Below, piece by piece: positions 13,909-62,434 of a stretch of 64,000 nt of DNA. The first letter of the stretch is position 1; each line of letters starts with the position of its first letter. The stretch lies in IMG/VR virus record IMGVR_UViG_3300027747_002221, positions 62,001 through 126,000 of that record; one strand, 5' to 3'. Made by a program: the position numbers and the translations under genes. The notes under the pieces were generated by a model that saw nothing but the letters and a program-made list of their open reading frames with translations, did no database searches and was not told the origin of the DNA.

Positions 13909-14969
13909 ACTTCCTCATAGTGTTGTGCCTCAACATAAAGTGTTTTTAAAATTCCCTTTAGTCTTTCTTTATCTGCATCTGTTTCAATACTATCCACATA
14001 ATTGGACAATAATGTCATAGTATCTTCTAAATCAATATTTTCATCTATTGCTTCAGATTCAAACTCAGAAAAATCCTCAATAATTTTTAATTCAATTGGA
14101 TTTTCCTTATAGATTGCTTCTACAAATTTATCAAACTTATAGAAGTCTTTTTTATTAACAACAATAATTTTGATTAGCTTAGAATTAAATTTTGTGATGT
14201 CGATAGACAACGGATCTTCTTTTTCGTCATCATAGTAATATTTCTCAAAAATAGTATTTGTATTTTTAATAAATTCTAGGTCCAATGTCTTAGTATCAAA
14301 GATATGAAATCCACGGTCATCCTCAAAGTCATTCCAGAATAATTGATATGGATTGCCTAGATACTGCACATTACCTCGACCATGCTTATGGTGAAAATGT
14401 CCTGAACATACTAGTTTAAAATCTTTAAACAGCGCAGGATCAAATCCGTCGTGTCCTAGATGCGCATCCTGCCCTTTATACATTATAAAACCAGCAAGCT
14501 CTAAATGACCAAAGCAAACAGTTGCTACTTTACCCTCAATCATTTTTGTGGTATGTTCATAATTATCTGTACATATCCATGGCATTAACAGTATCTTTAA
14601 ACCATCATAGTTTACTACTTGTGCTTTATCGTATGTTCTGATATTTGGATATTCTCCCAATAATAAACTAGGGGAATTTACATCATTAGTATTTTTATAG
14701 AATGTATCATGATTGCCGATAATCATGTCCATATCTATACCACGAGATTCTACTTGTTCAAAGAAATATTTTTTACAATTGCTTAATGAATTAAAATTGA
14801 TATATTTTCTACGATCAAAGCAATCGCCTAGATGTATGATCTGAGTAATTTCTCTTTTATCTAATTCGGGAAAAAATATTTCATCATAAAATTTTTTAAA
14901 ATAAGTATCAAATTGTTGCGAATCTGATCTTGCACCGAAATGAGTATCAGTTACTAACGCTATCTTCAT
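13905..14969 (-). CDS. 47: Recombination endonuclease subunit gp47 (Mre11/SbcD-like)
   Basis: DTHFG, LGDCFD.R, GNHD, GHLEL, SGHFH, YLGNPY. Confidence 0.97.
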   Translation of the reverse strand: MKIALVTDTHFGARSDSQQFDTYFKKFYDEIFFPELDKREITQIIHLGDCFDRRKYINFNSLSNCKKYFFEQVESRGIDMDMIIGNHDTFYKNTNDVNSPSLLLGEYPNIRTYDKAQVVNYDGLKILLMPWICTDNYEHTTKMIEGKVATVCFGHLELAGFIMYKGQDAHLGHDGFDPALFKDFKLVCSGHFHHKHGRGNVQYLGNPYQLFWNDFEDDRGFHIFDTKTLDLEFIKNTNTIFEKYYYDDEKEDPLSIDITKFNSKLIKIIVVNKKDFYKFDKFVEAIYKENPIELKIIEDFSEFESEAIDENIDLEDTMTLLSNYVDSIETDADKERLKGILKTLYVEAQHYEEV

Positions 14970-15426
14970 CCACGTACTCCCAAGTTGAATCTCCTTTTTT
15001 AATTACGGATGCAACAAAAGTCAAATGCTCAGGTATATTTCCGCTCCAATTTTTTGGACCAATCAAACTCATTTGATTTTTATCGAGATATGTATTTAAA
15101 TATATGTGGTATTCTTTCCCATAAACAGGATTAAAAGAAAACATTGTTCCATGCACTAAATCTGTGGCATCAAGTCTACTTACCAATTGTTTTGCTTGTT
15201 CTTGTAGTATCTCAACCATTTGCATGATTCTATCATATTCTTGTTTGGCATGTTCTTTTGCAACATTTAATGATATGTCTTTTTGATCTTCAACTTTTAC
15301 AGGAGCAAAAAATGAGGAGCCGACTTCTACAGGATATTCGCTACTACTACGATTAATAAAGGGCACCAATTGTTCCCTAATTATGGCATCTCTACTATTA
15401 ACACCCTTCATTACATTACTTGGCAT
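14947..15426 (-). CDS. DUF2452-like protein
   Basis: YPVEVG...F.P, coiled coil, F.PV.GK.YH.Y, LIGP..W, D.TW. Confidence 0.6.
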   Translation of the reverse strand: MPSNVMKGVNSRDAIIREQLVPFINRSSSEYPVEVGSSFFAPVKVEDQKDISLNVAKEHAKQEYDRIMQMVEILQEQAKQLVSRLDATDLVHGTMFSFNPVYGKEYHIYLNTYLDKNQMSLIGPKNWSGNIPEHLTFVASVIKKGDSTWEYVDEDSVSN

Positions 15427-15454: not shown

Positions 15455-15904
15455 TTAGCCTTCGTAAATAGCTGAGTTAGCACCATGTTCTGCACATTCA
15501 ACTTTAACACAATAACAACGATTATTAGATGCATTTCTGATTAACTGATCCGCAAAGTTAAATGCATGTTCAGCAAACTTCTCTACACCCACCCCATCAA
15601 AGATGCGGATCTCTGCCAAGTCCAAGGCTTCAAGTTCCTGGAACTTGGCCAGATGTGGATCTGCTTTATCCAGGGCCAGCTTATGATCAAAGTGATCTTC
15701 CAACCATGCCTTGAGTGGTTTAAGACCACCAAAATCTACTGCCCAATTTTTGTTGTCTAGGGCATCGCATCCAAATGTAAAAGTAAATGCTAAACTATAA
15801 CCATGCAGCAAATGGCAATGACTATGATCTGCGTTAGGTTGTCTAAATACAGCACTTAAACCAATGTTGTGCCCGTAATGTTTTGTTGAGAAATATTTAG
15901 CCAT
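15455..15904 (-). CDS. queD: 6-carboxy-5,6,7,8-tetrahydropterin synthase
   Basis: C..LHGY, WAVDFGGLK, FDH, terminal E in VECAEH. Confidence 0.9.
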   Translation of the reverse strand: MAKYFSTKHYGHNIGLSAVFRQPNADHSHCHLLHGYSLAFTFTFGCDALDNKNWAVDFGGLKPLKAWLEDHFDHKLALDKADPHLAKFQELEALDLAEIRIFDGVGVEKFAEHAFNFADQLIRNASNNRCYCVKVECAEHGANSAIYEG

Positions 15905-15924: not shown

Positions 15925-15980
15925 GTTTGATGACATGCAGAATTTATATAGCGGGGTGAATGTCATTTAAAGACCGCTTT
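15925..15980 (-). promoter_or_regulatory. Candidate preQ-type riboswitch / H-type pseudoknot upstream of queD
   Basis: P1 AGCGG/CCGCU; loop AUGACAU pairs with downstream AUGUCAU (7 bp); A-rich tail AUAUAAA. Confidence 0.5.
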
Positions 15981-16978
15981 TTTAATCTATGATAATATTT
16001 AGAGTTATACCAATCGTATAACGTTTCTATAATATCATTTAATTTTCTTTTAGGTTTCCACCCAGTATCTGCTAATAATTTTTCTGCACTAGCAATTAGT
16101 GTTGCCGGATCGCCTTTTCTTCGTACATCTATATGACATATAATTCGGTCGTTTATTGCTTCGTTATTGATTAAAAAATCTTCAACTGCAGTAAACACCT
16201 CAAGATTCGAATGACCCTTTAATGTTCCTATATTATATATCCCTTCAATATCTTTGTCAATAGCTAAAACATGAGCATCGGCTATATCTGTTACATGGAT
16301 ATAATCTCTAACACAAGTACCATCTCGTGTAAGAAAGTCTGCGCCATTAATAGTAAAATCATTACCTTGTAAAGCGGCTTCAAACAATTTCGCAAATATA
16401 TGTGTGGCGTCGGGTTCTTGCCCATGTACCCCACCTTCAACTGCGCCACATGCATTAAAATATCTATATGACACATACTTCAATCCGTATGCAACTTTAA
16501 ATCTCTCTAACATCATTTCTGTCATTAGTTTAGATTCACCATATGGAGATATTGGTTTAGTTTCAGAAGCCTCAGTCAATATCATACCTATCGGCTCACC
16601 ATAAACTGCAGCACTGCTACTAAAAACAAACTTAATATTAGGTGCCCACCGACGTATGTAATCTAAATACTTCAATGTTTTTGCCACATTATTATTAAAA
16701 TATTCTGAAGGATTCTCTACACTCGGTCCTACTAAACTTGTTCCTGCACAATGTATAACAGCAACAGGGTTGCGCTCAAGGTGCTCCAATGAAAACGGGT
16801 GTGTAAAACATTCATTGACAAATTGATCTACATAATATTCCATATGCTTGTGTAGTTTTCTTTTGTCAATACCCACTACTTTATAACCATGTTCTTTTAA
16901 TGCAATACATGTAGCGCCACCGATATAGCCGGCAGCACCTGTTACTATAACAGTATTAGTATTTTGATTCTGAGACAT
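15944..16978 (-). CDS. galE: UDP-glucose 4-epimerase
   Basis: VTGAAGYIG, FSSSAAVYG, PYGESK, RYFNACGA, DGTCVRDYIHV.D. Confidence 0.92.
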   Translation of the reverse strand: MSQNQNTNTVIVTGAAGYIGGATCIALKEHGYKVVGIDKRKLHKHMEYYVDQFVNECFTHPFSLEHLERNPVAVIHCAGTSLVGPSVENPSEYFNNNVAKTLKYLDYIRRWAPNIKFVFSSSAAVYGEPIGMILTEASETKPISPYGESKLMTEMMLERFKVAYGLKYVSYRYFNACGAVEGGVHGQEPDATHIFAKLFEAALQGNDFTINGADFLTRDGTCVRDYIHVTDIADAHVLAIDKDIEGIYNIGTLKGHSNLEVFTAVEDFLINNEAINDRIICHIDVRRKGDPATLIASAEKLLADTGWKPKRKLNDIIETLYDWYNSKYYHRLKKRSLNDIHPAI

Positions 16979-18125
16979 TGTTTCTATAATCCTTAGTATT
17001 ACGATACCATTTCTCAGATCCATCAATCATAATGTCAATACATCTGTCAATAGTTCCAGTAGTCCAATTAGATAATTGTCCCATTTTCTTTCTTGGTTTA
17101 ACTAATAAATTATCTAGTTTATTTTTAACATCTTCCATAGACCAAGGAATATATAAACATTCCGCGTCATTAGCAAATGACTCAGGGAAAGATCTATAGG
17201 CGGGATACAAACAATTTGTACCAAGTGCATCTGCTTCTGATGCTGTGTTACTTACCCAATCTTGTAAAGCGCAATTAAACAATACTCGAGAATCTGCCAA
17301 CAATTCATAATATTCATTCTTTTTAAGATTTTCATAGATCTTAAAATTAGAAGTTTTTTCTAATTCCCTTGCGCGATCTAAATACTTTTGATCGTTACTA
17401 CGTAATGGACCGCCCGATAAAACAGCAAACTCTACATCTCGATTATACTTACCATAGTCCTCAACTAGATCCATAAAGAATCCTGGTTGCTTTTCCTGAT
17501 CGAATCTAGCAGCAAACACCACTCGCTTTTTACGAGTAATGAATGGTTTAATTTCAGCAATACGACTTTGTACTTCATCTTTATCAAATGCTAATCCGGA
17601 GATATTATAGATTGGTGCTTTCCAACCTGCGATCCTCATATGTGCAACCATCTCTTCATTCGATGCAAGAATACCTGTTACCCAAGTATCACACATTTTT
17701 TCATAATGCCCCATCCATTCCTGCATATCCCATACATGAAGGAAATCATCTGGGTCTATTGTCTGTGCAAGACAACGAACATAAATCTCAGGTTGATATT
17801 CCCAAGGTAATTGATCCACAATGTAGGGAATTGCTTCAATGCCGGGCGTAAACATATCCTCAAAGAAAATAGTATCGTTCCAGGTAATCTCACCCGACTT
17901 CATTTTTTTAACAAGATTAGCCATCTGCGTTAAAGAATAATAACTACGACCATGTGCATCAAGCACCTGACCTGTTACGATAGATTTGGAATCGTCAAGA
18001 ATATCACCGTGTATAATTTCATAATCAATTCCTCTGCGTTTAAATGCCGCTTCACTCCATTGCTGAAGTTGTAAAGTATATCGACCTTCATAAGGCTCTA
18101 AACCCATATAATATAACTTACTCAT
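16956..18125 (-). CDS. Glycosyltransferase (GT-B, GT4-like)
   Basis: VFAARFDQEKQP, YY.LL..S.VLFN.ALQD...EA.ALG...L.P.YRSFPE. Confidence 0.8.
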   Translation of the reverse strand: MSKLYYMGLEPYEGRYTLQLQQWSEAAFKRRGIDYEIIHGDILDDSKSIVTGQVLDAHGRSYYSLTQMANLVKKMKSGEITWNDTIFFEDMFTPGIEAIPYIVDQLPWEYQPEIYVRCLAQTIDPDDFLHVWDMQEWMGHYEKMCDTWVTGILASNEEMVAHMRIAGWKAPIYNISGLAFDKDEVQSRIAEIKPFITRKKRVVFAARFDQEKQPGFFMDLVEDYGKYNRDVEFAVLSGGPLRSNDQKYLDRARELEKTSNFKIYENLKKNEYYELLADSRVLFNCALQDWVSNTASEADALGTNCLYPAYRSFPESFANDAECLYIPWSMEDVKNKLDNLLVKPRKKMGQLSNWTTGTIDRCIDIMIDGSEKWYRNTKDYRNNVSESKY

Positions 18126-18517
18126 TATCTCTCCTCAAAAACAAGTCTGCATCCATTCTCACCATCTTCTGATACTTCTATAGTATAACATCTTGAAGGC
18201 CATTGCTCAAGACATCTGGCATACAATTCTCTTGCCATCATTTCGCATGATTTATAATCTAATTGTAATGTGCCATCAGAATACCATCGTTCCATAATAC
18301 GCTTTGCCTGAATAAATTCAACATCTCTGTTATCATGAAACACTTCCATTTCAACTTTAAAATGAAAAATATGCCTATGAGGCGTACCTAAAAAGGAAAC
18401 ATCTAACCAATCACCTGTAGCTAACTTGGGGTCAGTTGCAGCTGCAGGATACTTATGGATACCTTCTTTACGAAAGGTTGCCCATATATAACTTTTATTT
18501 AGTGTAAACATACTCAT
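18125..18517 (-). CDS. QueD-paralogous T-fold protein (DpdL-like, putative CDG decarboxylase)
   Basis: EGIH, LGTPHRHIF (LxxxHRHxF rather than QueD CxxxHGH), SCEMMA, VSEDGENG; adjacent to dpdA. Confidence 0.7.
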   Translation of the reverse strand: MSMFTLNKSYIWATFRKEGIHKYPAAATDPKLATGDWLDVSFLGTPHRHIFHFKVEMEVFHDNRDVEFIQAKRIMERWYSDGTLQLDYKSCEMMARELYARCLEQWPSRCYTIEVSEDGENGCRLVFEER

Positions 18518-19803
18518 CCAAATAACTCCTCAAGTGAAGATGGAGCCACAGCATTGACTGGCTCCGAATCCATAAATTTACCGACATGCTTTTCCCAATA
18601 AAGAAAATCCTCGTTTGTCTTTACATCAAATAATGTAGAGTATTCGTTTTCACAACCTTTGTCTCTGCAGAATCTTAAGAAATTTTCTTTTGAATTCATT
18701 AGTTCAGAAACATCCATTGTAAAGTTATGCACATTAGTTAAAATAAATGCCAATCTTGCTTTCATTACATCAATGAATTTGCCACCTTGTTCTAAATATA
18801 GACCAACCGCAATATTCATTAACTTGTGATATTCCTCGGGCGTATATTCTGTGCCACATACAGAATTAATCTCACTAACAACTGTTCTATAAATGTTAGA
18901 ATATTCTCTTCCCATTTTTACTGAAGAACCGCCATAATCACCTGGGCTATTTTTCTTACAGTGTGAGAAGTAAAACAATCCATTGTCCAATGACATAGAA
19001 TGTGTTGTAGAATCATACGAGATATCTACACCATCATATAGACCAGTTTGACTAAATAGCAAATAAGGTAAAATACGTTTAAGTGCACCTACACCTAAGA
19101 CGTGCAAATGAAATGGTCTTTCGAATGGAACAGAATTAACATAAAATGCCCGTTTAACATCTTCAAGGGGTCCCATACCCAATGCAGCTGATCCCATGGC
19201 AACACCACCGATACGATGATGTAGTTCTTTAGGTATTTCAGCTAACATACATTCTGCCCATTTAGCATAAGTATCTGCACCCGAACCTTGCAAAATGGCA
19301 AATGGTTTACACTTGCTCTTTAATGAATCAAATTTTAGAATTTGATCTTTAACATTTCTGCCTGTTGCTCTCGCATAAGACTCAAAATTTTCCATGTCAA
19401 CATATCTACGCTTAGTATCAATCTTTGCTGATACACCACTAGCAGATGTGGATTTTACTGGAATCTCATCAAACGCCATACCAATGTCAGCATATGTGCC
19501 TTGATTCTCATATACTTTGTTTCTTGTCTCTGGAGTATTCTGCAATCCTCGAGTAATAATTTGCAATCCCCCAGAGTCAGCATGAATATTTTTAATTGCT
19601 GGTCTAAACTTCTGCAACTTATTACCAAAGTTCTTTTCTGTAAATCCATTATACAATAATGAGAATTGGTGATTATTTTTATTATGAACAGTTTTATTAA
19701 TTAGATCAATAATCATTTGTAATGTCTCTGGATCATTACATTGTTCTGCACCCAGTCTCAGATATGCTGGACCTGATATTACATATTCTAAAATTTTACT
19801 CAT
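18514..19803 (-). CDS. dpdA: DpdA-like DNA 7-deazaguanine transglycosylase (TGT fold)
   Basis: TGT motifs in order: HADSGGLQ, FDEIP, ILQG, GVAMG, HLHVLG, SYDSTT; no tRNA-TGT zinc motif; que-gene context. Confidence 0.8.
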   Translation of the reverse strand: MSKILEYVISGPAYLRLGAEQCNDPETLQMIIDLINKTVHNKNNHQFSLLYNGFTEKNFGNKLQKFRPAIKNIHADSGGLQIITRGLQNTPETRNKVYENQGTYADIGMAFDEIPVKSTSASGVSAKIDTKRRYVDMENFESYARATGRNVKDQILKFDSLKSKCKPFAILQGSGADTYAKWAECMLAEIPKELHHRIGGVAMGSAALGMGPLEDVKRAFYVNSVPFERPFHLHVLGVGALKRILPYLLFSQTGLYDGVDISYDSTTHSMSLDNGLFYFSHCKKNSPGDYGGSSVKMGREYSNIYRTVVSEINSVCGTEYTPEEYHKLMNIAVGLYLEQGGKFIDVMKARLAFILTNVHNFTMDVSELMNSKENFLRFCRDKGCENEYSTLFDVKTNEDFLYWEKHVGKFMDSEPVNAVAPSSLEELFG

Positions 19804-21164
19804 GCGAATAAGCTTTCTAAAGTATCTGTTTCTTTTTCAGATGGTATGAAGTTTGGATCTTTTGCCAAGTATGTGTCTTTGTCTGTATAAATTATATTAT
19901 ACTTTGACTTATTTGTCAATACACTTTTGACATCATCTATTGCTAAGAATGACCTATTTAGTATGCGAACAAAGTCAATATATTTAATTTCGGAATACTC
20001 ATTTATTTTTGCAGAATCTGATTTTGATGTGACCGAAGGGGCGTATGATTCTACAAAGTCTTTCCAATACTTTGCTGTGCCCGAATCCAAATCTTTAATA
20101 TATTGTAGTGCACCATTACCATACCATTTTTCAGGTTTCATTCCATAAACAGCCTTAATAGCTTCGCCTGCTTCTGATACTGGTTTTCTAATATAATATT
20201 TTTTATCGAAGTTTGTTACCCATTCCGATTTGTCAATAACAACACATGGCATATGACCAAGACATTCAAAGAATGTAAATGGATAATTTTCTCGTAAAGA
20301 AGGATTAAAATGAACTTTTGCAGATTTAATAAAGTCTACTTTTTCGTCACCAACAACTCCTGACTTAATTTCATAATTAGTAATTTCCAATTCTGCGAGA
20401 CGAGCTTCGAATTTTTTCTTACCATTACTATTAGTAATAATCTTTGCAGGCAATCCTGTTTCTTTTATAATTTTAAGAAATGCTTCAGGATTTTTTCTAT
20501 CTTCCCAACGACCAATATAAAGTACACCCTCTCTTGTTCCATTATTTTCTACAAGGAGACCTCGTTCAGACATAGGCATAGGTAATTTTTTAACATTGAT
20601 TCCCCCGTTGCCTGAGATTTCATTCACGTTACGATCAGATTGCGTACCAATATAACAATTTTCAAGATTCATTAAATTATTAAAGAACTCATTGCAACTT
20701 TCACTAAACACCCCTTTGAATTTTCTAGTGTCACGGAACACCATACTTTCCTCATGTGTGTAGAATACAACTGGGATATATTTGTTTAGATCAAAAGATA
20801 AAGCAGCAGGCATTGCTTCTAATGAATTACATACTATCATATCATATAGATTAGTATTAAATGCTTTCATTATAGCATTCCTAAAATTGAGCATCTTCTC
20901 AAAATTAATAGAATCAGTAAATGCAAATGTGCCGGTATGATTCTTATATGACATAGGCGCATCCGAAGTGATTATGTTAGCACCTAAAGACTCAACCAGT
21001 GCACCGAAATCGTTACTTGACGCCTTATCTAAAATTAAATCAACTTTCCAATTTAAGTCTTTAGCCATCTCAGTAAAGCCTTTAGCAAATTGCCCTATAC
21101 CTCCGTGGGGTACAAGATGTTGATCACTAATACAAAAAGCAATACGCTTACTATATATTTTCAT
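19800..21164 (-). CDS. Glycosyltransferase (GT-B, GT4-like)
   Basis: PHGGIGQF, LYIGRWEDRKNPE, NPSLRENYPFTFFE. Confidence 0.82.
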   Translation of the reverse strand: MKIYSKRIAFCISDQHLVPHGGIGQFAKGFTEMAKDLNWKVDLILDKASSNDFGALVESLGANIITSDAPMSYKNHTGTFAFTDSINFEKMLNFRNAIMKAFNTNLYDMIVCNSLEAMPAALSFDLNKYIPVVFYTHEESMVFRDTRKFKGVFSESCNEFFNNLMNLENCYIGTQSDRNVNEISGNGGINVKKLPMPMSERGLLVENNGTREGVLYIGRWEDRKNPEAFLKIIKETGLPAKIITNSNGKKKFEARLAELEITNYEIKSGVVGDEKVDFIKSAKVHFNPSLRENYPFTFFECLGHMPCVVIDKSEWVTNFDKKYYIRKPVSEAGEAIKAVYGMKPEKWYGNGALQYIKDLDSGTAKYWKDFVESYAPSVTSKSDSAKINEYSEIKYIDFVRILNRSFLAIDDVKSVLTNKSKYNIIYTDKDTYLAKDPNFIPSEKETDTLESLFA

Positions 21165-21166
21165 AC

Positions 21167-21676
21167 TTATTCACCTAGTATTTTGATTAGATGTTTAGTC
21201 TGATGCATAGCATCATCTAAAGCATTATGATATGTTCCTTCTCTTGCATCTGCAGGTACCCAATGGAATAATGCTTTAACTGTGCGATAGCAACGATCAT
21301 CCCAGCATTTCCATGGAGGTTCTCTATCAGTGTTAAAATACGCATTTGCTAAAATTGTATTATCGAAGACTGCACCGTTGCCCCATACAGGTAGGCTCTT
21401 AGGTCCGAACCATTCCTCAAATTCATCTAGTGCTTGTTTTAGTGGGATATTATTGCGGGTAAGTTCTCGCAGTGCTTCTTTATTTTGTTCAGACCACCAT
21501 TTGACTGTCTCTTTTGAGATATGCATTCCTGCATCTTTACAAGTCTTAATGTCTACAGTACAATAAAAAGTATCTAGTATTTCTTTACCTTCAAATTTTA
21601 CTGCACCTATTGAGCAAATAGCAGCATTAGATCTTGTTGACATTGTTTCCAAATCAACCATAATATTAACTGTCAT
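21167..21676 (-). CDS. DEDDh 3'-5' exonuclease (DexA / RNase AS-like)
   Basis: MVDLET, IGAV.F, WGNGA.FD, R..RT, HNALDDA. Confidence 0.88.
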   Translation of the reverse strand: MTVNIMVDLETMSTRSNAAICSIGAVKFEGKEILDTFYCTVDIKTCKDAGMHISKETVKWWSEQNKEALRELTRNNIPLKQALDEFEEWFGPKSLPVWGNGAVFDNTILANAYFNTDREPPWKCWDDRCYRTVKALFHWVPADAREGTYHNALDDAMHQTKHLIKILGE

Positions 21677-21684
21677 ATATTGTC

Positions 21685-22620
21685 CTATTGTAATTCTTTC
21701 ACCCATTGTTCCACGTAGTTAGACCAATCATAAGATTTGGCATGTTCTCTTATACTATAACATCTTTCTCTATATTTTTCTGGTCTATCCCTATAGTATT
21801 TTAAAGCATTTACTGCAAATTCCATAAATTCGTTTTCTTCGATTGGTACAGAAATGCCCCCGAAAATACCAACTTTATCGTTCCACCATCCGACACTAGT
21901 ACCAATAACTAATTTACCTGCGGCACCTGCTTCTAATAAAGGCAAACTACCACCTTCTTCAAAACTAGATACAATAATAGCATCAACTGCTTTATAAAAA
22001 CCTGGCATAGTAACAAAACTATTATGATAATTACTTGCTACCCTAAATTCTAACCCTGCTTTTTCTGTAGCTTCACTTGCAAGGTAACCTCTTTTTTTAT
22101 ATCTAGGTTGCGATATAGGACTGTCTATCATTTCTTGAGTAAATTCATTGCGCCCATGATATGCACTGGCATACCCTACTACACGAAGTTGTTCATTCGG
22201 TTCAGTATAAAAAGAATTATAAGTAATACCGATAGGATAAACGACAGGTTCTCTAGGTATACCTATGGTTTTACTATAATCTTTTAAAAAATTACTAACA
22301 ACACCAAAGTTTTTAACATGATTAAAATCTTCGAAACCATATTTATAACCATATTCAGTTAAATCCAAAGTAGCATGACCTATAACAATACACCGCTCTA
22401 AAGGAATACTAAAAGAATTTTTTAATACTGCAAGCCCGTGGGGGTTTGTTACCCAGAAATCTATTAACAAATCTAATTCACGTATTTCTTCTACAGAATA
22501 TATTTTATCCCAAGGAAGTAAATTACAGTTATATCCATAGTTCCAAAGATATTTAAATAGACCATAATGAATAGATCCCAGTGCCCATTCATTATCAAAT
22601 AAAAAAACTACATTTTTCAC
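21685..22620 (-). CDS. Glycosyltransferase (GT-B-like)
   Basis: KKRG, FYKAVDAIIVSSFEEGGSLPLLEAGAAGKLVIGT.VG, YDWS. Confidence 0.8.
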   Translation of the reverse strand: MKNVVFLFDNEWALGSIHYGLFKYLWNYGYNCNLLPWDKIYSVEEIRELDLLIDFWVTNPHGLAVLKNSFSIPLERCIVIGHATLDLTEYGYKYGFEDFNHVKNFGVVSNFLKDYSKTIGIPREPVVYPIGITYNSFYTEPNEQLRVVGYASAYHGRNEFTQEMIDSPISQPRYKKRGYLASEATEKAGLEFRVASNYHNSFVTMPGFYKAVDAIIVSSFEEGGSLPLLEAGAAGKLVIGTSVGWWNDKVGIFGGISVPIEENEFMEFAVNALKYYRDRPEKYRERCYSIREHAKSYDWSNYVEQWVKELQ

Positions 22621-23297
22621 TTACCGCACATTCTTGCAATACTTAAAAATTCATTTCTTGCTGATGGATCTGTTTTAAATCCGCCACCTAAACGAACTGT
22701 AACTGTGGATGAACCTGTATCTTCAACCCCTCTAGATTTGACACAGTAATGTTGGGCGTCAATCATGACAGCAACATCCTCAGTATCAAGAATAAATTGA
22801 AGTGTATGAAAAATTTGTTCTGTTAGACGTTCTTGAATTTGCGGGCGTTTACTAAAATATTCTACAATACGATTGATCTTGGAGAGTCCAAGAACTCGTG
22901 CTTTCGGAACATATGCCACAGTAGCAACACCGTCAATTACTACAAAATGATGCTCACAATTGCTTTGAACATTTACATTTCTTTCTACAACCATTTCGTT
23001 GTAGTTCATTTTATTGTCTACTGTTGTACATTTAGGAAATGCATCATAGTCCAATCCCCAGAAAATTTCATTAACATACATCTTAGCAACACGGTTTGGT
23101 GTTTCTATTAGACTATCATCTGTTAAATCTAATCCCAATGTTCGCATAATAGTACTAAAAGCTTTTTCTATAAGTTCAATCTTTATTTTGCGATCTATAC
23201 CATTGTTTTCGTAAGGTGTTTCAACACCCATTTTAACTAGATGTTCATGAACCTTTAGACCAAGTTCAGAGTCAGTTTTTGTTTTGTTGTATGACAT
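22617..23297 (-). CDS. folE: GTP cyclohydrolase I
   Basis: ETP.RVAKMY, CEHH, GLSKINR, RPQIQERLT, HYCVKSRGV. Confidence 0.97.
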   Translation of the reverse strand: MSYNKTKTDSELGLKVHEHLVKMGVETPYENNGIDRKIKIELIEKAFSTIMRTLGLDLTDDSLIETPNRVAKMYVNEIFWGLDYDAFPKCTTVDNKMNYNEMVVERNVNVQSNCEHHFVVIDGVATVAYVPKARVLGLSKINRIVEYFSKRPQIQERLTEQIFHTLQFILDTEDVAVMIDAQHYCVKSRGVEDTGSSTVTVRLGGGFKTDPSARNEFLSIARMCGK

Positions 23298-23584: not shown

Positions 23585-24427
23585 TTATGTTCCCCATTCG
23601 TTTTTGAACAATGGGACTTGTAGTCTGTCACTATATCGCCAGCCTTTTTTCATTGCCAATTCTGCAACTGTTCTGTTATTAAGATTATAAAGTTCTGGAA
23701 CACCGCCACACGGCATAAGATATACAGGACCTTTAAAACCCTTTTTACTATATTCATTTACTGCTTGTTCCGCTTCTTCTGCATCTTCTTTAGTTGCTAT
23801 CACAAACTTCAAATAAGTAAAGCCAGTATTGTAATATTGTTGAACAACATCAGAGCAAATAGCATCTTCCCAACTCTCACCACTGATACTTAGTTTAGGA
23901 CTAACACTAAACGTCAGACAATGTAGGAAACGATGCTTCTTCCAATCATTTAAGAAAGTAACTAATTCAGATTCTAACAACTGTGTACCATTAGTTTCAA
24001 ATGTTATTTCTTGTAAGCCACGCATATTATCATGTGATAATAAATCGGGATAAGCACGTTGCCAACCTAGTAGCGGTTCACCACCCGTGATAACCAAATG
24101 CTCATCTTTCCAACGACCATGAGGGAGTAAATCGGTAATAGTATCAACAATAGTATTGGTGTCGAGAACAGGACTGAGATGTTTGAAGCGTGGATCCCAA
24201 CTCGCATAACTATCACATCCAGTAGATACAAGTGGTAGTGATTTATAAGATTTAAACTTTTCTCCGTCCACCGCAAAACGCTCAACACTTTTTTCTCCCT
24301 TGGACATTCCAAAGCCATCACATTTAAAGTTGCAACCGAATGTTCTCAAAAAAACAGAGGGTACGCCCATATAACGACCCTCGCCCTGTATACTATAAAA
24401 TAGTTCAGATATTTTCAGCTTGCTCAT
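23585..24427 (-). CDS. queE: 7-carboxy-7-deazaguanine synthase (radical SAM)
   Basis: ELFYSIQGEG, FLRTFGCNFKC...(insert)...GCDS, ITGGEP, ETNGT, SVSPK; start trimmed to MSKL. Confidence 0.92.
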   Translation of the reverse strand: MSKLKISELFYSIQGEGRYMGVPSVFLRTFGCNFKCDGFGMSKGEKSVERFAVDGEKFKSYKSLPLVSTGCDSYASWDPRFKHLSPVLDTNTIVDTITDLLPHGRWKDEHLVITGGEPLLGWQRAYPDLLSHDNMRGLQEITFETNGTQLLESELVTFLNDWKKHRFLHCLTFSVSPKLSISGESWEDAICSDVVQQYYNTGFTYLKFVIATKEDAEEAEQAVNEYSKKGFKGPVYLMPCGGVPELYNLNNRTVAELAMKKGWRYSDRLQVPLFKNEWGT

Positions 24428-24686
24428 ATATTGTAGACCATTCCCTAAGTTTATCAAATTTTCTATGTTGCGCTTCTTTGACTTGTAGATAATCTACAAT
24501 ACCATTATCGTAGCATAGTTCAATCATTGCTATAAGATCACCAATTTCTTCAGTCAATCGTTGTCGATTGGTAGCACCATTATATTCACCATCTATTCCA
24601 AAGCGTAAACATTTTGAAATTGCTTGTGTTACTTCTGCACATTCTTCTTGAAGAATAAGCATAACTTCTTTTTTAGAATCATTCAT
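24405..24686 (-). CDS. MazG-like nucleotide pyrophosphohydrolase
   Basis: EECAEV.QAISK..RFG, EEIGDL. Confidence 0.8.
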   Translation of the reverse strand: MNDSKKEVMLILQEECAEVTQAISKCLRFGIDGEYNGATNRQRLTEEIGDLIAMIELCYDNGIVDYLQVKEAQHRKFDKLREWSTIYEQAENI

Positions 24687-24717: not shown

Positions 24718-24746
24718 ATTATATAATATTTAGTCAATCATGTCAA
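24718..24746 (-). promoter_or_regulatory. Consensus sigma70 promoter TTGACA-17-TATAAT heading the deazaguanine cluster
   Basis: Minus strand TTGACA tgattgactaaatatta TATAAT, ~30 nt before mazG-like ATG. Confidence 0.8.
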
Positions 24747-59866: not shown

Positions 59867-62434
59867 TTATGCTAAATTTACCAAAGATTTCGAAACAGGT
59901 GTATGATTAGCAAATGTCTGTACTGGAGGGTTGGATGTTTTAACTATTGCCCCGTTTGCAGTTAAGAACGCAATGTGTATCCACGCCGATCTTAATTTAT
60001 TATTTCCAGACTCAAACGCATATTCCAGAATAATTTGTCTATGTGGAATATTTTGTACTATCCATTGAGCTATGTCGCTGTAATCTTTAAATCTAGTATT
60101 TGTAAATTTTATATCTGCAGCCGCACCTAATCCATGATCACTTGTCTCAGAATTACTCCCAGTAACTATAGTTGTTACTGGTCTAAACACACTATTAATT
60201 TTCATATCAGGAAATTTTGCCTTAATAGGATCTAAACAATTTACAGTTAATTGTTTTAAGTTATATACTATTTGTTTCTCTGTCAATCCTCGTTGAGCAA
60301 CCAACCCGCCATCTTTTAACATATCATCCAACGTAAATATTCTGTTATCTTTATTGGATAATATAAATGATCTTGGGAAGAATGTAAATTTATTAATATC
60401 CGCATCATTTACTTTTATTACAGGAGTAGCTGCAGAAAGTATTGCCTCACCCTCAACTACTTTAGGAACAATACTAGTGTTAATTAAACCTAGTTGTTCT
60501 AAGCTTAATTTATAGGCATCTGTTCCCGCATCCCCGGCGTCATGGTAGAATGTTGCTTTGGATACTACCTCTCTTTGTAATAAAGGAATAGGTGTTTTAT
60601 CTGGTGATTTTTTCTCAGGTAATTTATCTATTGGACGATCTATTTGCTGAATACTCACGGCACCTGATTGTTGTTTTACGGTAGCGCCTTCTATTAAAGT
60701 TTCTAATCCCCCGTTTATACTCATAGTAGATGCTCTACCAGATTCCATTAAGAAATCTCCGGAAGCTTTTTGAACAATATCTCCATCTTTGGAGTAAAAA
60801 TTTATTCCTTTACCCTGCATACTAATGGGACCCTCGGATACTAGACTAAAACTCTTAGCTGCGGTAACCCTTAAATTTTCGGATATGATACTTGTTTGGC
60901 CGGCACTTTGTACCAACGTATTTCCATGACTTGTTACTGCCAGGTCACCCTCTACTTGAATTTTTGCGTCATCCTTAACTAATATACTAGTTTTGCCTTC
61001 GACCGTTATACATTGAGCCCCTTTAACATATACTAGATTATTACGATCTATAACCTCATAATTATCACCTACGGTTTTTCTCACCATTGATCCATTTACG
61101 TCAATCTCAATATATGTGCCTGTCTTATGAAATATATGTATTCTTTCTGCGCCCGGTGTGCTATCTAATTCTATTAAATGCCCGGCCTCAGTTTCTGTAA
61201 CTTGATTATACGGGTATCCCGCACCATACGCAGAGTCGGGTTCGTTCCATGTTTGTTTACTATTGGCTAATTGAATATTGTCTATTTTCTTATTCTTTTT
61301 TACGTTAAAACTTTTATGTGTTACATCACCGACTGCTAATTTATTAATATCACTAACCCCCGTATAATCTAAGCTTGGATATTTTTTATTTGGATCTTGA
61401 AATCCTTTTATATTATTTAAAGCAGAATTATTTAAAGCAGCATTGTTTGTATTTGTATTATTTGTACTTGGTAAAAAATTACCTGCGGCGTCTAGTTTAT
61501 ATTCAAAATCTCTTGCATTTCCGCCTAGAGCAGTATTAACGGCAACAAAATAATCCTTAGCTAATTTTCCATTAATATCTTTTTTATTTAATTTGTCTGC
61601 ATTAGTTACACCCATTGCTAATGATGTGGCTAATAATCCAGCAACATCTTTTGGATCATCTTTATCTGAAATTTTTCCCATTTGTAACAGAGTATTATAA
61701 TTAATTTTGGATGCCGCAACAACTGCAGATTCCTGTATTGCAGTATCTTCTAAAAATTTTGTTTTACTTGTTATGCCATCCTTACCTGTCCAATTATTAG
61801 AATCAGCAGTCCATGTAGCTGAAACTATATCTTCCGGACATCTTTTAACATATCCCAAATCAATTAAAGCATTGACACTTAACTGATACTTACCTAAATC
61901 TCCTGCAGAACTTTCCTTAGCATAATTTCCACCTGATACTTTTTCAGAAAATGTTTTAAGAAATGTATTTAAATCTGTTTGTGTCAACGGACCTAAATTA
62001 GGTTGAGAATTTTTGTCAGTTTTTACCACATAGGTATTATCCTGATTAACTAAAGCTTCCCCGCCGGAACTTTTAACAACATTATTTATGGATTTATCCT
62101 GTGCTTGTCTAACCAATGATGCTACAGACGGAGAGGGTTTGCCCGCAAGTGTTCCTATAATTAACGGGCGTTGCATCTCCGATCCATCCATAAACCAACC
62201 CACAACCCAAGTTCCTGGTACTATACCTACAGGTGCAGAACCTACTCCTGACGTTGCTGCAGATGTTATAGACTGCATAGGTAGGGCCCATGGTAAATCT
62301 GAGGTAGGCAATGCTGTAGTATCCGCAGTATGATGACCGAATACTCTTACCCGGCATCTTCCTAGTTTTTCTGGATCGTCTCTATCCTCAACAACTCCAG
62401 TCCACCAGACAAGCTCATTATTACCAAATATCAT
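59867..62434 (-). CDS. 5: Baseplate hub/needle gp5 with lysozyme-like insert and C-terminal peptidase M15
   Basis: WW.GVVEDR.DP..LGR.RVR..G.H, LPWA; YPYN.V.ETE.GH..E.D.TP..ERI; SDH..G.AADI...WIH. Confidence 0.9.
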   Translation of the reverse strand: MIFGNNELVWWTGVVEDRDDPEKLGRCRVRVFGHHTADTTALPTSDLPWALPMQSITSAATSGVGSAPVGIVPGTWVVGWFMDGSEMQRPLIIGTLAGKPSPSVASLVRQAQDKSINNVVKSSGGEALVNQDNTYVVKTDKNSQPNLGPLTQTDLNTFLKTFSEKVSGGNYAKESSAGDLGKYQLSVNALIDLGYVKRCPEDIVSATWTADSNNWTGKDGITSKTKFLEDTAIQESAVVAASKINYNTLLQMGKISDKDDPKDVAGLLATSLAMGVTNADKLNKKDINGKLAKDYFVAVNTALGGNARDFEYKLDAAGNFLPSTNNTNTNNAALNNSALNNIKGFQDPNKKYPSLDYTGVSDINKLAVGDVTHKSFNVKKNKKIDNIQLANSKQTWNEPDSAYGAGYPYNQVTETEAGHLIELDSTPGAERIHIFHKTGTYIEIDVNGSMVRKTVGDNYEVIDRNNLVYVKGAQCITVEGKTSILVKDDAKIQVEGDLAVTSHGNTLVQSAGQTSIISENLRVTAAKSFSLVSEGPISMQGKGINFYSKDGDIVQKASGDFLMESGRASTMSINGGLETLIEGATVKQQSGAVSIQQIDRPIDKLPEKKSPDKTPIPLLQREVVSKATFYHDAGDAGTDAYKLSLEQLGLINTSIVPKVVEGEAILSAATPVIKVNDADINKFTFFPRSFILSNKDNRIFTLDDMLKDGGLVAQRGLTEKQIVYNLKQLTVNCLDPIKAKFPDMKINSVFRPVTTIVTGSNSETSDHGLGAAADIKFTNTRFKDYSDIAQWIVQNIPHRQIILEYAFESGNNKLRSAWIHIAFLTANGAIVKTSNPPVQTFANHTPVSKSLVNLA

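Follow-up and report, generated by a model that had tools for sequence, protein, structure and literature searches.

Phages that carry a DNA guanine transglycosylase but no QueC raise the question of which deazaguanine reaches their DNA, and this question becomes sharper when glycosyltransferase genes lie in the same gene run. We examined one such locus in a 64,000-nucleotide stretch (the window; positions 62,001 to 126,000 of IMG/VR record IMGVR_UViG_3300027747_002221), which belongs to a 222,055-bp phage genome rated 100% complete by CheckV. A preliminary description, made from the sequence alone, had proposed a second T-fold gene, a DpdL-like QueD paralogue, coupled to dpdA in a cluster without queC. 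It had also pointed out that plain dDG offers no C7 handle to the neighbouring glycosyltransferases (GTs), so that either the GTs act on CDG or another position, or the enzyme does different chemistry, or the DNA carries mixed modifications.

The gene and its neighbourhood

Our analysis confirmed that the ORF at 18125-18517 exists. It lies on the minus strand, starts with ATG and encodes 130 aa, while the frame on the plus strand is full of stops. The genes around it form a tightly packed, overlapping run on the minus strand, in the order queE, folE, GT311, exonuclease, GT454, dpdA, dpdL, GT389, galE and queD, where GT311, GT454 and GT389 denote the three glycosyltransferase or glycosyltransferase-like genes. 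The features are as follows.

14947..15426, minus strand: DUF2452 protein after QueD, kept in 6-7 related loci
15455..15904, minus strand: QueD, phage type with a CxxxHGY motif (CPH4 synthase)
15944..16978, minus strand: GalE, UDP-glucose 4-epimerase; the ORF opens at TTG 17026, but the likely true start is ATG 16978
16956..18125, minus strand: GT389, GT-B glycosyltransferase of the retaining GT4/GT5 type, the conserved partner of DpdL plus long DpdA
18125..18517, minus strand: DpdL, QueD-like T-fold protein (predicted structure) of 130 aa with the LxxxHRHxF motif, proposed CDG decarboxylase
18514..19803, minus strand: DpdA, DpdA2-like DNA guanine transglycosylase of 429 aa with an HADSGG motif
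19800..21164, minus strand: GT454, second GT4-family glycosyltransferase, conserved just upstream of dpdA in this lineage and in BUCT-ZZ01
19891..19919, minus strand: perfect sigma-70 consensus (TTGACA-17-TATAAT) about 90 nt upstream of the dpdA start, by pattern match only; a possible early promoter for dpdA-dpdL-GT389-galE
21167..21706, minus strand: Rv2179c-like DEDD 3'-5' exonuclease, conserved between FolE and GT454 in this lineage
21685..22620, minus strand: GT311, third glycosyltransferase-like gene (phrog_18799), seen only in this genome among the 80 IMG/VR loci
22617..23297, minus strand: FolE, GTP cyclohydrolase I
23585..24457, minus strand: QueE-like radical SAM enzyme (CDG synthase)

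The dpdA stop overlaps the dpdL start as ATGA, and the dpdL stop overlaps the GT389 start as TAATG. No QueC, QueF or Gat-QueC was found in the window or anywhere in the complete genome, and no second TGT was found in the genome. The search of the rest of the genome for queC, which had been named beforehand as a test, was therefore negative. The host's own QueC could, however, in principle still feed preQ0. The observation made in the preliminary description thus holds, with one correction. It had called the separate queD canonical and had given the QueD motif as CxxxHGH. This QueD (PF01242, E 2e-13; phrog_2389, E 7e-39) is the only PTPS-family hit in the genome, and it carries CHLLHGY, that is CxxxHGY, so "canonical" is only roughly right. 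We first suspected that this variant was specific to DpdL phages, but the QueC-bearing phages phiSM, immuto_2-6A, BcepGomr and Mendera have it too, and it is shared by phage QueDs in general.

Membership in the DpdL family

Cui et al. 2023 (PMC10516641) define DpdL as a QueD paralogue with LxxxHRHxF in place of the QueD CxxxHGH motif, which is found in phages encoding DpdA, FolE, QueD and QueE but not QueC, and which is proposed, not shown, to decarboxylate CDG to 7-deazaguanine. The account of this literature in the preliminary description was accurate. Our tblastn search gave 53.4% identity to DpdL of Acidovorax phage ACP17 (E 2e-33) and 33.3% to CGPG_00067 of Cellulophaga phage phiST (E 3e-7, over 91% of the query), both of which are named DpdL in that paper, and phrog_17812 was hit with E 2e-30. 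The motif is LGTPHRHIF at residues 43-51, and L43, H47, R48, H49 and F51 are invariant in 31 relatives of 61-100% identity. All four companion genes (dpdA, folE, queD and queE) are in the same gene run.

Pfam and NCBIfam scans of the protein found nothing, and a PDB sequence search with the family profile found nothing meaningful. Only fold and profile-profile comparison showed the link to QueD. The AF2 model (pLDDT 91.7) best matches E. coli QueD (PDB 4ntk; TM 0.68-0.73), and the top Foldseek hits are 4ntk and PTPS structures (TM 0.64-0.73), which confirms the T-fold at the level of the predicted structure. Alignment of the DpdL profile against phage QueD by hhalign gave 85% with E 6e-6, and placed the motif on the C...HG(H/Y) motif of QueD. 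Compared with QueD/PTPS (COG0720), the protein keeps the His-x-His of the zinc site (H47 and H49) and a conserved Glu (E92) that aligns with the conserved QueD Glu, which we read as the anchor of the 2-amino-4-oxo-pyrimidine ring. Its catalytic Cys is replaced by Leu43, the Gly is replaced by Arg, and the first zinc His is displaced. It is very unlikely to be just a second, ordinary QueD, although QueD is its best fold match. There was no PF01242 or TIGR03367 hit even at E 0.01, QueD is inactive without that Cys (cited in PMC10516641), and a proper QueD is already present. It cannot be a CPH4 synthase by the known mechanism.

QueF and QueF-L provide a precedent for T-fold proteins that bind a 7-substituted deazaguanine and do chemistry at C7. 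They reduce or transfer a nitrile through a catalytic Cys, while DpdL has no such Cys at the motif position and its proposed chemistry is a decarboxylation.

The family is far beyond chance: more than 8000 clusters at 90% identity (a lower bound) and 2862 clusters at 50% identity match it. A megablast search of the gene cluster against the phage collection found nothing. QueC is absent from 8 of 10 cultured DpdL phages.

The transglycosylase and the glycosyltransferase

The neighbouring DpdA is homologous to the DpdA2 of Vibrio phages VH7D/nt-1, with 31.7% identity over 86% to VH7D DpdA2 (E 3e-47), whose activity is shown in PMC10516641, and with 32.5% identity to the ACP17 enzyme. It hit phrog_10773 (E 1.5e-94), and its HADSGG motif, which contains the TGT-type DSGG, is invariant. 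The TIGR00430 hit was weak (E 8e-5), and there was no PF01702 hit.

GT389 was modelled with pLDDT 83.7 and is predicted to have a GT-B fold with a Glycos_transf_1-type C-terminal domain. The model gave more than 500 PDB matches at E below 1e-3, led by glycogen synthase, BshA, MshA, PglA and WaaG. PF00534 scored 25.2 bits in hmmscan, just under the cut-off of 26.4, and 27.5 bits in the genome search, over it. GalE scored 273 bits against TIGR01179, above the equivalog cut-off of 262.

We then compared 116 DpdL loci from cultured phages, IMG/VR and MAG contigs. DpdL has two exclusive partner sets in these loci. One is a short DpdA3 with no glycosyltransferase, as in phiST, whose DNA has 100% dDG by LC-MS. 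The other is a long DpdA (DpdA2-like, or a divergent 514-aa form) with one orthologous GT4-type transferase, often followed by GalE. In loci with 3 kb on both sides, long DpdA has GT389 in 39 of 40 and DpdA3 has it in 0 of 11 (Fisher p 2.5e-10), although the loci are not phylogenetically independent, so that this p value overstates the support. The pattern was repeated by 25 MAG contigs. GT389 sits within 100 bp of DpdL in 25 of 53 loci, while FolE is the most frequent neighbour of DpdL, in 59 of 91 loci. The second set made up the majority of the 116 loci sampled, and it is present in the cultured phages BUCT-ZZ01, ACP17, BUDD, BCSR5, Phosso and PA5oct, of which BUCT-ZZ01 is a Synechococcus phage, BUDD a Xanthomonas phage and PA5oct a Pseudomonas phage.

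Among 50,697 phage records, GT389 orthologues covering at least 80% of the query occur in 18, all of which carry DpdL. The GT hits in the PhiXhv-12 group are partial (63% coverage) and lie in a GlmS/deacetylase setting without DpdL, so they were not counted as orthologues. The pairing holds across three unrelated phage backbones, T4-like, PA5oct-like jumbo and ACP17/BUDD. Thus the GT link is no accident of this window. The published account of DpdL contains no glycosyltransferase term.

It remains possible, but unlikely in our view, that the DNA carries plain dDG and that the GTs and GalE serve another target, such as another base, a protein or a host glycan, and only happen to travel with the long DpdA cassette. 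dDG lacks a handle, the GT4 fold says nothing about the acceptor, large T4-like phages often carry GTs, and a further strong GT hit lies elsewhere in this genome. A complex prediction for DpdA plus GT389, made without controls, gave a score of 0.00, which is no evidence either way. Against this reading stand the restriction of GT389 orthologues to DpdL phages in the records searched, their closeness to DpdL, the spread over the three backbones, and the fact that the pairing switches off when DpdA3 replaces the long DpdA.

DpdL sequences from GT-linked and DpdA3-linked loci intermix inside one clade with 99% support. This suggests that DpdL chemistry is probably the same in both settings, most likely CDG to 7-deazaguanine. 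The difference then lies in the transglycosylase and the sugar step.

Fusions of DpdL

A YhhQ/Vut_1 transporter-DpdL fusion exists, which is in favour of a free-base substrate. DpdL is also fused to a PIG-L/LmbE-like domain with AHPDDE and HxxH motifs in 8 representative clusters, to a PAPS-reductase-like PP-loop domain, and to the protein c7_173, which sits just upstream of DpdL in PA5oct-type loci. No Pfam or PHROG hit and no usable Atlas hit was found for c7_173, and hhalign gave no link to DpdA, DpdL, QueD, the GTs, PRT or DUF2452. The PIG-L assignment is tentative: its Pfam hits (E 5e-5 to 2e-3) are all below the cut-off, there was no PDB sequence hit, and only the N-terminal motif aligns to an annotated deacetylase. 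The genome studied here has none of the PIG-L-like, PP-loop and c7_173 fusion partners. Some DpdL phages carry a PIG-L-like domain or have it fused to DpdL, and BshA and MshA are among the best structural matches of GT389, which is the same enzyme pairing as in bacillithiol and mycothiol synthesis (BshA/MshA with BshB/MshB), where a GT4 transferase works with a PIG-L deacetylase. This window, however, has no PIG-L-like gene.

The fusions to the PIG-L/LmbE-like and PAPS-reductase-like domains could mean that DpdL works on a sugar-linked or activated-carboxylate intermediate. In that case DpdL would be a true family member but not a simple CDG decarboxylase. It would bind the deazaguanine or pterin ring and make or process a C7 handle or a sugar-linked intermediate, the GTs would have a normal O- or N-acceptor, and dDG in phiST would arise differently or as a side product. 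That the decarboxylase assignment is only a prediction, that heterologous tests failed and that FolE is the most frequent neighbour agree with this reading. We consider it unlikely, since the same DpdL clade serves phiST-type loci that have no GT, no PIG-L-like gene and no PP-loop gene, and phiST DNA has plain dDG.

A glycosylated pterin made by FolE, the T-fold protein and the GT4 enzyme, by analogy with cyanobacterial pteridine glycosides, is more improbable still. FolE, DpdL and GT389 are adjacent, and T-fold enzymes of this clan bind pterins. But DpdL lacks the catalytic Cys of PTPS and QueD, the module always includes a DNA transglycosylase and QueE, and phiST-type loci yield dDG in DNA.

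Proposed pathway

The explanation we favour, with a probability of roughly 0.55, is that FolE, QueD and QueE make 7-carboxy-7-deazaguanine (CDG), that DpdL, with no QueC present, removes the carboxylate from the free base in a metal-assisted reaction to give 7-deazaguanine, and that the DpdA2-like transglycosylase swaps this for guanine in phage DNA. In this view the deazaguanine would probably be decorated with a sugar in this lineage, after or before insertion, by GT389 using UDP-galactose or UDP-GalNAc from the phage GalE, and GT454 and GT311 may extend the sugar. No thymidylate-synthase-type hydroxymethylase that could supply hmC or hmU as another sugar acceptor was found in the genome.

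The interpretation in the preliminary description is supported, and its puzzle is real; we could narrow it but not settle it chemically. Membership in the family, the modelled fold, the motif, the gene arrangement, the absence of QueC and QueF and the co-occurrence of GT389 with long DpdA forms come directly from our analysis, while the decarboxylation (proposed in the literature, never demonstrated), the sugar donor and the deazaguanine as sugar acceptor are inferred. No DpdL has ever shown decarboxylase activity, dDG has been measured only in phiST-type phages, and dpdL plus dpdA of phiST and of ACP17 gave no dDG in E. coli (PMC10516641). Moreover, 7-deazaguanine has no hydroxyl, amine or carboxyl at C7, so an O- or N-glycoside at that position is impossible, and a C-glycoside made by a retaining GT4 enzyme is not known to have a precedent.

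The functional model for GT389 is given by the T4 alpha- and beta-glucosyltransferases, phage GT-B enzymes that use a UDP-sugar to decorate hydroxymethylcytosine in DNA after replication. They are not among the top 50 structural matches of GT389, and their acceptor is a hydroxymethyl group, which dDG lacks. Compared with phiST, which pairs DpdL with the short DpdA3 and has no GT, this window, like ACP17, pairs DpdL with a long DpdA2-like enzyme plus a dedicated GT4 transferase, and has in addition GalE and two more GTs.

A bolder reading, which is possible but doubtful on present evidence, is that the cassette of long DpdA, DpdL, GT4 transferase and GalE, very common in environmental phages, writes a sugar-bearing 7-deazaguanine into phage DNA. 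Decarboxylation by DpdL would then free the electron-rich C7 for a carbon-linked hexose or hexosamine, or the base would be glycosylated before a roomier DpdA inserts it. Our literature searches for a glycosylated deazaguanine in DNA found nothing relevant, and this would be the first glycosylated purine analogue in any DNA. It could also be why dpdL plus dpdA of ACP17 gave no dDG in E. coli, although the GT-less phiST pair failed as well.

DpdL is the least understood step of the phage 7-deazaguanine pathways, predicted and described from a handful of phages. Our analysis indicates that it is a very large, apparently phage-restricted family with two mutually exclusive partner sets, of which the one with DpdA3 matches the only measured product, dDG, while the other has no known product. 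If the transferase acts on the deazaguanine, this is a new class of DNA hypermodification on a purine position. That would bear on restriction evasion, on sequencing and enzymology tools, and on the sensing of modified DNA by defence nucleases; PA5oct is already known to carry an unidentified modified G and to be targeted by END nucleases.

Coordinates and gene run

The ORF lies on the minus strand at 18125-18517 and encodes a protein of 130 aa (P0001), while the plus strand is closed by stops. P0001 carries LGTPHRHIF, which is exactly the LxxxHRHxF pattern given in the preliminary description, and the observation made there is confirmed. The window is part of a 222,055-bp IMG/VR virus record rated as complete by CheckV. 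It has 35.6% G+C, and 128 of its 133 ORFs longer than about 200 aa lie on one strand. Its UvsW, gp46/gp47, gp55-like sigma factor, CobS-like ATPase and 2OG-Fe(II) oxygenase mark it as a T4-like myovirus. Its nearest cultured relatives, Methylophilales phage Melnitz and the cyanomyoviruses, are distant, with 57% UvsW identity or less. A separate 62-kb IMG/VR contig (IMGVR_UViG_3300010334_002856) is 100% identical at the protein level across all 15 cluster genes compared in a 16 kb stretch, and may be the same phage recovered again, or the same record.

Genes of the tightly packed run, all on the minus strand
23585-24457 (-): QueE-like radical SAM enzyme
22617-23297 (-): FolE
21685-22620 (-): GT311, glycosyltransferase-like
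21167-21706 (-): DEDD exonuclease
19800-21164 (-): GT454, GT4-type transferase
18514-19803 (-): DpdA
18125-18517 (-): DpdL, the gene under study
16956-18125 (-): GT389, second GT4-type transferase
15944-16978 (-): GalE (TIGR01179, 273 bits; cut-off 262)
15455-15904 (-): QueD
14947-15426 (-): DUF2452 protein

The dpdA stop and the dpdL start share ATGA, and the dpdL stop and the GT389 start share TAATG. The gene is therefore translationally coupled on both sides. A pattern scan, without other support, found three perfect TTGACA-17-TATAAT matches on the minus strand, at 24718-24746, 19891-19919 and 16232-16260, which lie upstream of the queE region, of dpdA and of queD, respectively. The latter two sit inside the 3′ ends of GT454 and galE. 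They may be early promoters that split the run into units.

The transglycosylase is DpdA2-like. It is 31.7% identical over 86% of its length to the DpdA2 of Vibrio phage VH7D (E 3e-47), whose base-insertion activity was shown experimentally, and 32.5% identical to the ACP17 protein.

Searches of the whole genome found no QueC. No QueF was found either, and the only weak signal lies inside FolE, as a T-fold cross-match. There was no second PTPS-family gene, no Pfam-level TGT and no thymidylate-synthase-type hydroxymethylase. The genome also lacks a phosphoribosyltransferase, DpdA3 and the other partner genes seen in related loci. The strongest Glycos_transf_1 hit in the genome (58 bits, 219140-219532 of the record, outside the window) lies in a 558-aa ORF far from the deazaguanine cluster, and the phage therefore has at least four GT-like genes.

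Identity of the protein

P0001 was not recognised by curated family models. A tblastn search against 50,697 phage records found 29 records, including Acidovorax phage ACP17 (53%, E 2e-33) and the Cellulophaga phiST group (33%, E 3e-7). Those two proteins are the ones that were named DpdL by Cui et al. 2023 (PMC10516641), defined by the same motif and the same gene company. The AlphaFold model is confident (pLDDT 91.7), and its best PDB matches are E. coli QueD and other PTPS-family structures (TM 0.64-0.73). Profile-profile comparison with phage QueD gave 85% probability, in an alignment that puts Leu43 on the QueD catalytic Cys, H47 and H49 on the zinc His-x-His, and E92 on a conserved QueD Glu. 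So this is a DpdL and not a QueD.

The family is very large, with more than 8000 clusters at 90% identity (a lower bound) and 2862 clusters at 50% identity. In a scan of one genome per prokaryotic species, all 25 hits were MAG contigs (L104-L128) assigned to unrelated phyla, from Rickettsiales to Methanobacteriota and Nitrosarchaeum. They carry phage-type DpdL modules, which indicates that they are very likely phage contigs binned into MAGs.

Proposed function of DpdL

The published proposal is a metal-assisted decarboxylation of the free base CDG to 7-deazaguanine. It rests on phiST DNA being 100% dDG and on the lack of any other candidate gene. However, co-expression of dpdL and dpdA from phiST or ACP17 in E. 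coli gave no dDG, and the possibility that DpdL does other chemistry is kept open, although it is considered unlikely.

Our analysis showed that QueC is absent from 8 of 10 cultured DpdL phages. Phage BUDD has a sub-threshold PP-loop hit. Vibrio phage D479, which has DpdL and DpdA3, has a partial QueC-family hit (33 bits, model positions 133-201) at 153872-154066 in a 278-aa ORF about 100 kb from its DpdL. Both hits are far from the cluster, and D479 is either an exception or carries a different PP-loop enzyme.

Fusion proteins were also found. A YhhQ/Vut_1-type transporter joined to DpdL fits a free-base substrate, and there are DpdL-MazG (P0268), DpdL-PAPS-reductase-like and, in one representative, c7_173-DpdL (P0167) fusions. 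In eight representative clusters (P0142, P0163, P0166, P0230, P0233, P0253, P0259 and P0266), a domain with AHPDDE and HxxH motifs is fused to the N-terminus of DpdL. It looks like a PIG-L/LmbE sugar deacetylase, but the Pfam support is weak. In phages BUDD and BCSR5 this domain stands alone (loci L088:4381-5028 and L092:9951-10658) next to a PAPS-reductase-like gene. A fold search of BFVD found the DpdL fold inside two longer viral proteins, A0A6J5LEZ6 (459 aa) and A0A8S5V119 (300 aa), one named 'alcohol dehydrogenase, N-terminal' and one 'AAA domain protein', which may be further fusions.

The neighbouring QueD (15455-15904) carries CHLLHGY (CxxxHGY), in which the third zinc-ligand His of the textbook CxxxHGH motif is Tyr. 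All 29 QueDs with a recognisable motif in the DpdL loci share this, and so do the four QueDs checked from other phages (phiSM, immuto_2-6A, BcepGomr and Mendera), at least two of which sit next to QueC. It looks like a general phage QueD variant, whose metal site may differ, and it gives no clue to DpdL.

Association with a glycosyltransferase

We clustered all ORFs in 91 DpdL loci, comprising 80 IMG/VR contigs and 11 cultured phages, and three architectures appeared.

T1 is that of this window, BUCT-ZZ01, ACP17 and BUDD. The core order in this window and BUCT-ZZ01 is FolE-GT454-DpdA2-DpdL-GT389. The window and its IMG/VR relatives add the exonuclease after FolE and GalE-QueD after GT389, while ACP17 and BUDD keep DpdA2, GT389 and DpdL next to each other in other orders.

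T2 is that of PA5oct and many uncultured phages, with the order polymerase, clamp, a 514-aa protein, c7_173, DpdL, GT389, sometimes GalE, FolE, phosphoribosyltransferase, QueE. The 514-aa protein is a divergent DpdA (profile-profile probability 94%, E 1e-7 over 249 columns). The c7_173 protein has 173 aa and no detectable family, and it sits directly upstream of DpdL in PA5oct-type loci (L048:6209-6730 and 35 other loci) and upstream of DpdA in ACP17 (L002:6297-6695). The phosphoribosyltransferase (PF00156) sits between FolE and QueE in many GT-linked loci (L054:13193-13660 and 20 other loci; BUCT-ZZ01, L006:4093-4554; PA5oct, L003:10190-10624), where it could salvage the guanine released by base exchange, or ribosylate the deazapurine.

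T3 is that of phiST, RHph_I1_18, Ahp1, D479 and Bakedbeans, with the order QueE, QueD, FolE, DpdL, DpdA3, then a dCTP-deaminase/dUTPase-like gene, and there is no GT. The DpdA3 assignment rests on full-length similarity to phiST CGPG_00065. The dCTP-deaminase/dUTPase-like gene (PF22769), about +1.9 kb from DpdL, follows DpdA3 in 20 of 23 loci (L010, L012, L018, L028-L038, L089, L091 and L093 among the loci noted) and never occurs with a long DpdA. phiST has a MazG-like gene at the matching place, and the P0268 fusion joins DpdL to MazG. This suggests that dNTP-pool control goes with full G replacement.

Among loci with at least 3 kb on both sides of DpdL, GT389 is present in 39 of 40 with a long DpdA and in 0 of 11 with DpdA3 (Fisher p 2.5e-10, not corrected for relatedness). 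It lies within 100 bp of DpdL in 25 of 53 loci, and the 25 MAG contigs repeat the rule. In the cultured-phage collection, GT389 orthologues covering at least 80% of the query occur in 18 records, all of which carry DpdL. Separately, a trio of GlmS, PIG-L-type deacetylase and GT4 transferase (Xanthomonas phage PhiXhv-12, L102:4669-7903) occurs in a 227-kb phage group that has QueD but no detectable DpdL, and it may be another sugar-based modification route.

In a DpdL tree (a quick tree on 141 columns), T1 and T3 sequences were intermixed within one clade of 27 rows with 99% support, and the DpdL of the window is 79% identical to that of a T3 contig. DpdL therefore does not differ between the two settings. 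What is exchanged is the cassette around it, either DpdA3 with the dCTP-deaminase-like gene or a long DpdA with GT389.

Predicted type of the transferase

The GT389 model (pLDDT 83.7) is a GT-B enzyme. Its closest matches are retaining GT4/GT5 enzymes, namely glycogen synthase, BshA, MshA, PglA, WaaG, PimA and SenB, while the T4 DNA glucosyltransferases are not among the listed matches. GalE next door implies a UDP-galactose or UDP-GalNAc donor. At the position aligned by eye with E. coli Tyr299, the phage enzyme has Leu, which is compatible with N-acetylated substrates, although this is no more than a lead.

Interpretation

The simplest reading that fits these data is that DpdL makes the same base, most likely 7-deazaguanine, in all settings. 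With DpdA3 it would go into DNA as such, and with a long DpdA it would be accompanied by a sugar step. The membership of the protein in the DpdL family, its motif, its QueD-like predicted fold, the gene order, the absence of QueC and QueF from the genome and the co-occurrence of GT389 with long DpdA forms come from our analysis, whereas the decarboxylation, the sugar donor and the deazaguanine as sugar acceptor are inferred.

The strict pairing of GT389 with the type of transglycosylase (39 of 40 loci) suggests either that the base is glycosylated before insertion, so that the long DpdA needs to accept a bulkier substrate, or that the two enzymes act together on DNA. As pointed out in the preliminary description, dDG offers no O or N handle at C7 for the putative sugar. 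A carbon-linked sugar at the electron-rich pyrrole carbon is chemically conceivable but has no known precedent for this enzyme class. Two further readings are retained as rivals: that the GTs serve another target, which is unlikely, and that the module makes a pterin glycoside, which is very unlikely. No report of a glycosylated deazaguanine in DNA was found in the literature searched, while PA5oct is reported to carry an unidentified modified G.

The interpretation offered in the preliminary description is supported by these results. The gene itself adds a member to DpdL, a family already named but functionally unproven. What has not been described before among the deazaguanine DNA-modification systems is the partnership of long DpdA forms with a GT4 transferase, in some loci together with GalE, and this variant is carried by phages that are already in culture.
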